Shown here in pieces: positions 26,697-28,810 of a stretch of DNA of 64,000 bases; within the stretch, counting starts at the first letter, position 1; the number at the start of each line of letters is the position of its first letter. The notes below the pieces were generated by a model, which was given only the letters and a program-made list of their open reading frames with translations, did no database searches and was not told the origin of the DNA. The DNA is taken from NCBI GenBank assembly GCA_943704425.1, contig CALSCP010002461.1, forward strand, positions 1-64,000, read 5' to 3'. This stretch comes from Ministeria vibrans ATCC 50519 (taxonomy: Eukaryota; Protista; Filasterea). The position numbers and the translations under genes are program-made.

Positions 26697-28810
26697 ATGG
26701 ACGACGCAGTCAAGCGAGTGTACCAGGAGGTCATGGCCATCTCCAGAAAGTCTGTCTTTGACGACGAGGCGGTGATCTCGTTCAGCGACGAGCATCCCTT
26801 GAATGTGGAGGTGACGGAAGATAACAGTCGACTGCATGTGATATTGACTGTCTCTCTCGCTCTCTCTCTCTCTCTCTCTCTCTCTCTCTCTCTCTCTCTC
26901 TCTCTCTCTCTCTCTCTCTCTCTCTCTCTCTCTCTCTCTCTCTCTCTCTCGCTCGCTCGCTCGCTCGCTCTTCCGTGTGCCTTCTTACGCGCATGCAGGT
27001 GCTCTTCACACCGATGAGTGGGTAAGCCCGAAATGCCACCTCAGCTCTTTTTTTGTGCATTGTTACTCAACCGTCTCTTGTCGCTGTAGACATTTCCACG
27101 GCGCTGCCGTGCTGTTTGTGATCAAACTGCCCAACAACTACCCGAATTCGCGCCCCAAGGAGGTACGGAATGCGTCGTGAGCCCCACTTCTGGCAATGTT
27201 GTTGTTATTCGTCCATTCGACCGTCGACTCGCACTCGCACTCGCCCTCTTCCCGCCCCCTATCCCCTCTCTACCGTCTCTTCCCAGTGCCCGCTAAATCC
27301 GCTTCGTGCCGTATTGCTTCTGCTCTTCCGTTTCGCCCCTCGCGTGTGCATTGTGCAATCATGATGATGATGCAAGCAAAACACACACACACGCTCACAC
27401 TATTGTCGCGTGTCTTGTCCAGGTGCGCTGCCTCACCAAGGTCTACCATCCGAACATTGCCCTTAATGGTGCGGTCTGTCTGAATGTCATCAGTGGCGAC
27501 TGGGATGCGCGTCTGCGCATTGTTGACTTTGTTCAGGTAAGAGACAAACCACAACTTTTCGCGCATTTTTAGTAATAATTATTATTTATTATGGTTTAGG
27601 CGCTTTTGTGGCTTCTACAGTATCCCAATCTCGACTCACGCCTGAATGGCGCGGTGACGCACAAGGTACGCCAATCATCGTCTTAATTTTTAGAGTAGGA
27701 AGGAGTAAGACAAATGCATTTTTTCTAGATGAGTGAGTATGCGGAGAAGGTGAAGCTCGCCATCTGCGGCGAGAAGGTGGGGAATAACAAGTACGACCGA
27801 TGCCTGTCGGAGGATGCCTCGGTTGAGATTCTCCTGCGCGTGCTGCACGGCGGGCGCTGCTCGGGCAAGACGGCGGTGCACAAGGTCAATGGGTAAGCAT
27901 TTGTGCGGGCATTTTATTATTATTGTCTTGCTCCCTCGCGTCATTTATATGTGCTGTTTTTGTTGTAGTGCGGATATTATGTCGCTTCTGGGAGAGAAGC
28001 TGGGCGAGTCACTGATGAAGAAGTTCCCTGCGTTGGTGCGTGACGCAGTGGCGAACAAGATGGATGTGACAATTGTGGACGTGGGGCACGGGCGATGGTA
28101 TGCGACGGAGAATTGCAGCAAGGCACTGGAAGTGGACGCTGCACAGGTGGTCAAGGTGCTGGCATGGAAGGTCGCGGGGGTGCCGACGCTGCTGGCGATG
28201 TGTGGTCACGCACGGGTGGATGTGCGCAAGGTCGCCGCGCTGTTTAATGTGAGCGAGGACAAGGTGGAGCTCATCAAGCGCAAGGAGGTGTGCGAGGCGA
28301 CGGGGCACGCGTGGACGAGCGTCGCGCTGCAGGGCGGCAAGGTTGCCGAGGAAAACATTGTGTTGGACGTGTCGCTTTTGGCTCAGGAGCACCTTTTCAC
28401 CTCGGGAGGTACAAACAACAAACAACAATGATGATAAATTATATTAATTTTATGTGTTGTTTTTTTTTTGATCCCTAGGTGCGCCGCACACAATGGTTGG
28501 AATCAAGTCGGAGGACCTGGTAAAGATTCTGGGATCGGCACGGGTGGCGTCGATTGCCGAGGGTGTGCAAGAGAAGGCATCGGAGGAGGCGGTTGTGAAG
28601 GAGACGACGAACGAGGAGCGTCTGTTGGAGTTGGCGCGGCCGGTGGAGCCGCTGCAGATTGGTGCGGTTGTTGTGGACGCGGGCTCGTCGACATTGGAGG
28701 CGCACGCTGCGTCGGCCCCTACCACCCAGACGGTGTCTAGCCCGTGCTCTGCCGAGGTACTCTCGGCCACACAGATGATCACCACCGCATTGAGGTCGAT
28801 GTTTACGTGA
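26697..28810 (+). CDS. Fusion of a Ubc12/UBE2M-like E2 domain with a YbaK/ProXp-like aminoacyl-tRNA-editing domain
   Basis: Eight phase-compatible GT-AG exons; [21 protein letters not shown] and KYDRCL are E2-like; [57 protein letters not shown] are YbaK-like. Confidence 0.75.
26851..26970. repeat. (CT)n/(CGCT)n microsatellite, intronic
   Basis: Directly visible. Confidence 0.95.

Follow-up and report, generated by a model that had tools for sequence, protein, structure and literature searches.

Does a single gene of the filasterean Ministeria vibrans ATCC 50519 join an E2 to a YbaK/ProX tRNA-editing fold, or do two neighbouring genes merely look like one, and if the fusion is real, what might such a protein do? 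The question is raised by contig CALSCP010002461.1 of assembly GCA_943704425.1, of which we analysed positions 1–64,000 of the forward strand (hereafter the window). A first-pass annotation of this sequence had proposed that 26697–28810 encodes a Ubc12/NEDD8-type E2 fused to a YbaK/ProXp-like domain.

The coding region is distributed over eight exons on the plus strand. Each of the seven introns has GT-AG boundaries, and the exons join in frame without a stop; the gene structure put forward in the first-pass annotation was borne out both by a frame check and by the blocks of a transcript. The introns are 63–260 nt long with 23–55% GC, the exons have 59% GC, and an early stop appears in the frame check whenever any one of the seven introns is kept. 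The transcript is represented by Logan contig L034 (1522 nt, run SRR6471170), an independently assembled, intron-free sequence that encodes a 441-aa protein, P0008. By blastn and an exact concatenation test, L034 corresponds to window segments 26584–26810, 26999–27021, 27090–27162, 27423–27536, 27600–27665, 27729–27892, 27969–28408 and 28479–28893 joined end to end. The single mismatch to the window, C>A at 28608, changes Thr375 to Lys in the disordered tail, and the RNA and the DNA therefore derive from slightly different strains or alleles. Because L034 is intron-free, is otherwise identical to the genome, begins 113 nt 5′ of the ATG and ends 28 nt past an AATAAA, we take it to be the mRNA. 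Its extent defines a transcribed unit at 26584–28893 on the plus strand, with a 5′UTR (26584–26696) that holds an in-frame stop 5′ of the ATG, a TGA stop codon at 28808–28810, and a 3′UTR (28811–28893) with the AATAAA at 28860–28865. L034 also spans the 27892/27969 junction, across which a fused transcript had been predicted, with exactly 27893–27968 spliced out; the E2-YbaK fusion is therefore transcribed. The locus is one gene with one spliced mRNA and a 441-aa E2-YbaK protein, an architecture of which we are nearly certain. Our own joined exon model was used for the frame check and the comparison with L034, and all full-length searches were made with the database protein P0008.

The exons divide the protein in an orderly way. 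The coding part of exon 1 (26697–26810) supplies residues 1–38, comprising helix 1 and the first strand of the E2, and is followed by the 23-nt exon 2 (26999–27021) and by exon 3 (27090–27162), which encodes E2 strands and the YP..RP segment. Exon 4 (27423–27536) contains the E2 active site as delimited by UQ_con, with HPN at 27447–27455 and the catalytic Cys89 at 27477–27479, and exon 5 (27600–27665) contributes E2 helix 2 together with a 14-residue signature shared with a second fusion protein, P0010, described below. Alignment to UBE2M (1y8x) places the Ubc12-type C-terminal helices in exon 6 (27729–27892) up to a final ...RCL (27804–27806), after which the exon encodes the first 28 residues of a linker. 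Intron 6 (27893–27968; 76 nt, 38% GC, GTAAGC...TTGTAG) is the one removed at the junction between the two halves. Exon 7 (27969–28408) carries the remainder of the linker and, from near 28018, most of the YbaK/ProX fold as judged by tRNA_edit, alignment and structure match, including the codon for Lys247 (28153–28155) and a TSVAL segment (28315–28329) in the place of GXXXP. HPN, the catalytic Cys and the YbaK Lys all lie exactly where the first-pass annotation had located them. Intron 7 (28409–28478; 70 nt, 23% GC) interrupts the YbaK domain, which argues against bacterial contamination, and exon 8 (28479–28810) provides the final YbaK strands and helix (to about 28564) followed by a low-confidence tail of approximately 80 residues.

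Near the 5′ end, L034 uses 26811 as the donor of intron 1, and its exon 7 ends at 28408. A second in-phase GT donor lies at 26838, 27 nt past 26811, and would insert VTEDNSRLH in a loop of the E2 core, giving a protein of 450 aa, nine more than the 441 aa obtained with the donor at 26811. Intron 1 also contains, at 26850–26975, a long stretch of (CT)n that gives way to (CGCT)n.

The fusion gene is single-copy in its genome, which comprises 29.7 Mb in 2860 contigs, and none of the contigs had a human appearance. A GH27 feature (25350–26043) ends about 650 nt upstream of its ATG, and the next open reading frame starts with an ATG at 29239, about 350 nt downstream of the transcript end; nothing suggests a functional link of the fusion gene with either neighbour. 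The window has another E2 gene about 19 kb upstream, at 7525–7966 on the minus strand, with 49–53 bits against UQ_con in two of its exons. Part of the fusion locus is also present in an environmental sequence, a 1290-nt ENA locus (ERZ23497376, scaffold SCHR19-1_SAMN09406036_METAG-scaffold_12604) that includes exon 4, 6 and 7 sequences. P0001, a 160-aa protein from an ENA metagenome scaffold that is genomic and retains introns, is 99% identical to exon 7, and it was through the 90% cluster of P0001 that P0008 was located. This 99% identity of the exon 7 protein indicates that the organism or a close strain was present in that environmental sample.

Both halves of P0008 are recognised by the profile check that had been suggested for the spliced protein, with 66.1 bits to Pfam UQ_con (cut-off 27) and 43 bits to Pfam tRNA_edit over residues 230–347 (cut-off 25.5). 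For the E2 half, assignment to a subfamily became possible only with full-length P0008, after searches with individual exons: exon 4 alone scores 33.7 bits against UQ_con (cut-off 27) and, in exon-wise tblastn, matches the UBE2S-like gene of the genome as well as it matches its Ubc12, while exons 1 and 6 gave no E2 match in exon-wise PDB searches. With the full protein, the top matches among PDB sequences are UBE2M (1y8x, 68 bits) and yeast Ubc12 (3o2u, 65 bits), with UBE2S (52 bits) and the UBE2D and UBE2N groups (about 47 bits) as runners-up, and the alignment to 1y8x runs from ISFSD through HPN and the Cys to the final ...RCL. Structural comparison used an AF2 model of P0008 built from a composite alignment that drew only on database proteins and on metagenome loci in translation. 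In a Foldseek search with this model, Ubc12 structures rank first among E2s by E-value, and the E2 core matches known structures with Z of 14–16 over residues 1–140; pLDDT is mostly 70–88 in the first 120 residues and about 60 at 121–140. The UBE2M/Ubc12-like core and tail recognised in the first-pass annotation are thus recovered, and the E2 half is probably Ubc12/UBE2M-like, a call that is based on similarity ranking rather than on a tree. HPN (H79-P80-N81) and the catalytic Cys (C89) are present and are invariant in P0010, and with both intact the E2 half is apparently competent.

Relative to Ubc12/UBE2M (1y8x, 2nvu, 3o2u, 4p5o), which are the best sequence match for both fusion proteins, the fusion keeps the family-specific ...GG.IG..Y..RCL end but has no counterpart of their N-terminal docking peptide (about 26 residues) and gains about 285 residues at the C-terminus. 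In canonical Ubc12 this N-terminal extension docks on UBA3, the NEDD8 E1, and, when acetylated, on DCN1. The absence of the peptide, already noted from the genomic sequence, holds for the full-length protein: the core helix of P0008 begins at residue 3, and the in-frame stop in the 5′UTR means that there is no hidden N-terminal extension. A canonical Ubc12 gene is found elsewhere in the same genome (contig C157, 42023–42359), with a MIKIFSLKQQ docking peptide, a split exon structure and the usual active-site string. Given this separate canonical gene, the gene in the window is an extra, diverged paralogue without the docking peptide.

Mean pLDDT of the P0008 model is 70, with values of 83–98 over most of residues 230–360 and low values in the linker (158–200) and the tail (364–441). 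VIA-align identified a complete YbaK/ProX fold at residues 202–360, with Z of 18.5–19.9 (19.9 for 1wdv, 19.6 for 2cx5, 18.9 for 1dbx and 18.7 for 2dxa); the alignments cover 149–154 of 150–158 residues at an rmsd of 1.7–2.6 Å, and target TM-scores in Foldseek were 0.80–0.85. Together with the tRNA_edit match, this complete fold upholds the YbaK/ProXp assignment of the first-pass annotation. Exon 7 on its own scores 33.2 bits against tRNA_edit (cut-off 25.5) and falls in tRNA_edit clusters of the ESM Atlas at 0.90; P0008 gave nothing usable in the ESM Atlas, and a phmmer search of PDB sequences with exon 7 returned no match. Against NCBIfam TIGR00011 (YbaK Cys-tRNA(Pro) deacylase), exon 7 reached 24.5 bits, compared with a cut-off of 153. 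Judged by these comparisons, the YbaK half is a member of the INS superfamily that lies outside the TIGR00011 equivalog.

The stand-alone YbaK/ProX proteins of solved structure (1dbu/1dbx, 2dxa, 2cx5/2z0k and 1wdv) share with the fusion the entire fold, the Lys, the VD motif and a glycine-rich turn, but they are only about 20–24% identical to it, and the fusion domain is neither free-standing nor within a tRNA synthetase but follows an E2. K247 of P0008 corresponds to the QxxK Lys and is invariant across alignments with stand-alone relatives, whereas the loop reads TSVAL where these relatives carry G[SAT][VM]PP, so that the GXXXP pattern is absent; the altered loop and retained Lys are as the first-pass annotation had read them. 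Characterised INS-superfamily members all rely on the conserved Lys together with the GXXXP loop to hold the aminoacyl-tRNA during hydrolysis (PMC11286415). Of these two defining features, the fusion has the Lys and lacks the loop. Its tRNA_edit score of 43 bits compares with 88–104 bits for stand-alone relatives. The sole other tRNA_edit match in the genome (contig C2213, 28187–28432; 45 bits) lies in a 211-aa open frame. One of the nearest stand-alone relatives (Logan proteins P0004/P0007, 281 aa) has an N-terminal segment preceding tRNA_edit, and this segment resembles EthD weakly and below threshold (21.2 bits, cut-off 22).

A word search with P0008 recovered a second fusion protein. P0010 (527 aa; JGI metagenome 3300071654, contig Ga0620614_058368) consists of an E2 followed by a YbaK domain, scores above both Pfam cut-offs (71.1 bits for UQ_con and 35.8 bits for tRNA_edit), and is 35% identical to P0008 across 322 aa covering both domains. 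Its contig has 65–70% GC and a (TG)n repeat at its end, and the gene is intronless, from which we conclude that P0010 belongs to a different eukaryote. The likely start codon, an ATG at 559, leaves no docking peptide, and in PDB sequence searches P0010, like P0008, is closest to Ubc12/UBE2M (66.7 and 61.4 bits, compared with 53.7 bits for the next subfamily). The E2 halves of the two proteins are 49% identical, whereas P0008 is 30–37% identical to the Ubc12s, and HPN, the Cys, a KSVFDDEA segment and the 14-residue signature of exon 5 are common to both. By themselves, the YbaK halves are too diverged to be matched by tblastn, yet both still have the Lys, TSVA and a VD motif. The two proteins differ in that P0010 has a longer tail and an intronless gene and retains the Pro of GXXXP in its loop (TSVAP); they agree in the two domains, the order of these domains, the missing docking peptide and the derived TSVA. 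That both proteins have the derived loop indicates a single old fusion conserved by selection, to the extent that two sequences can suggest it, and the contrast between the similar E2 halves and the strongly diverged YbaK halves is what one would expect of an enzyme under constraint coupled to a binding module with more freedom to change.

The architecture appears to be very restricted. Searched by phmmer among 1.84 billion representatives, exon 7 gave six matches, none of them fused; one was the locus itself and the other five were stand-alone YbaK proteins of 30–42% identity, and P0010 was missed. A profile search with the two-member alignment found no third member. Exon 7 gave no match in a metagenome scan, and the two-member alignment gave 80 metagenome loci, all of them ordinary E2s or Ubc12s without a YbaK part; two signature peptides likewise had no match when prokaryotic species genomes were scanned. 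The family therefore has at least two members, a lower bound because the searches used length windows and word sharing and scored at most 8000 candidates. A literature search on the UQ_con/tRNA_edit architecture returned no paper describing it, and none on run SRR6471170. The first-pass annotation had known of no described E2-YbaK fusion, which stands as far as papers are concerned; as regards databases it needs amending, since the automatic JGI name of P0010 already lists both domains, although the protein has not been studied. This is a real and rare E2 domain architecture, apparently new to the literature. Our searches also returned an unrelated E2 fusion, P0011 (ENA, 470 aa), in which a von Willebrand A domain precedes the UBC core (VWA_2 36 bits, UQ_con 142 bits).

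Other E2s have appended targeting or regulatory domains, among them UBE2K with its UBA domain, UBE2O and BIRC6, and the principle is the same in the fusion, namely a UBC core and a module that selects partners or substrates in one chain. To our knowledge, none of these three has a tRNA-editing fold, and none was found to have one in the literature searched.

One explanation for these observations, to which we assign a probability of about 0.5 as a whole, is that the gene encodes an expressed Ubc12-like E2 with YbaK as a built-in recognition module. Residues 1–156 are a Ubc12/UBE2M-derived E2 core that is probably still able to carry a ubiquitin-like protein (UBL) as a thioester, followed by a linker (157–201, low confidence), the YbaK/ProX fold (202–360) and the tail (361–441, low confidence). 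NEDD8 cannot be assumed as the cargo because the docking peptide is missing. The known job of the YbaK fold is to grip the aminoacylated end of tRNA; in the fusion its hydrolytic editing may have been lost or changed, leaving a module that could recognise the tRNA 3′ end, aminoacylated or free, or alternatively a partner bound by stand-alone YbaK proteins, such as prolyl-tRNA synthetase. The charged E2 would thereby be delivered to the translation machinery, in the way that other long E2s are taken to their targets by their additional domains. That the YbaK fold acts in this way as an adaptor bringing the E2 to a target is a plausible but tentative mechanism, suggested by the sequence and the predicted model.

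Several other readings of the locus must be weighed against this one. That two adjacent genes have been misjoined would be a natural concern, because retention of intron 6 leads to an immediate TAA (27894–27896) at which an E2 could end, and an ATG five codons into exon 7 (27978) would be a sensible start for a stand-alone YbaK protein. The gap between two such genes would be just 81 nt, however, compared with about 650 nt on the GH27 side and about 350 nt before the next open reading frame; L034 removes exactly 27893–27968, and P0010 carries both domains in one uninterrupted frame. We reject this reading on the strength of the transcript contig and P0010, and consider it to have almost no remaining probability. 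One may also postulate a lineage-restricted chimera of no particular function that is expressed but drifting, as might be expected of an architecture with at least two members among billions of proteins and a linker and tail that are long and of low confidence. Such drift is hard to reconcile with the retention of the frame, both folds, HPN, the Cys, the Lys and TSVA at 35% identity across two organisms that differ greatly in base composition, and we regard it as improbable.

The remaining alternatives concern what the YbaK half does. It may be a working deacylase with a shifted substrate range, so that the chain carries two enzymes and the fusion merely couples expression or location to the E2, as for an editing factor that is modified in cis. 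The invariant catalytic Lys, the complete and confidently modelled YbaK fold and the loop Pro kept in P0010 are all consistent with such activity, but both members have Thr in place of the Gly of GXXXP and P0008 has Leu in place of the Pro, the tRNA_edit score is well below the 88–104 bits of stand-alone relatives, and divergence has been much faster in the YbaK halves than in the E2 halves; we consider two active enzymes on one chain rather unlikely. With the loop changed in both proteins, a low family score and faster evolution than in the E2, recognition is a more likely role for the YbaK half than enzymatic editing. A more radical version would have the YbaK pocket hold a tRNA 3′ end beside the E2 thioester, with the UBL passed to the tRNA-linked amino acid or the terminal ribose, in which case the substrate of the E2 would be nucleic-acid-linked rather than a protein. 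The argument for it is one of geometry, in that approximately 45 residues tether a reactive thioester carrier to a fold binding the CCA-aminoacyl end. A domain that has lost the hydrolytic loop but kept the binding Lys would also be well suited to hold its ligand without hydrolysing it; yet this scenario is drawn purely from domain identity, and we consider it very improbable. An expressed Ubc12-like E2 with a built-in recognition module therefore remains our preferred reading.

E2s and tRNA-editing domains come from two systems that have each been well studied but had no known physical link. Both known members of the family, which has at least two, come from little-studied or uncultured eukaryotes, and the functions discussed here are inferred. 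To the INS superfamily, the fusion adds a natural case of a retained catalytic Lys alongside a rewritten GXXXP loop. Transfer of a UBL to a tRNA-linked substrate, if true, would connect UBL conjugation to charged tRNA directly and at the level of chemistry. More generally, the fusion is a clonable reagent with which to ask whether UBL conjugation is ever aimed at charged tRNA, tRNA synthetases or stalled translation complexes.
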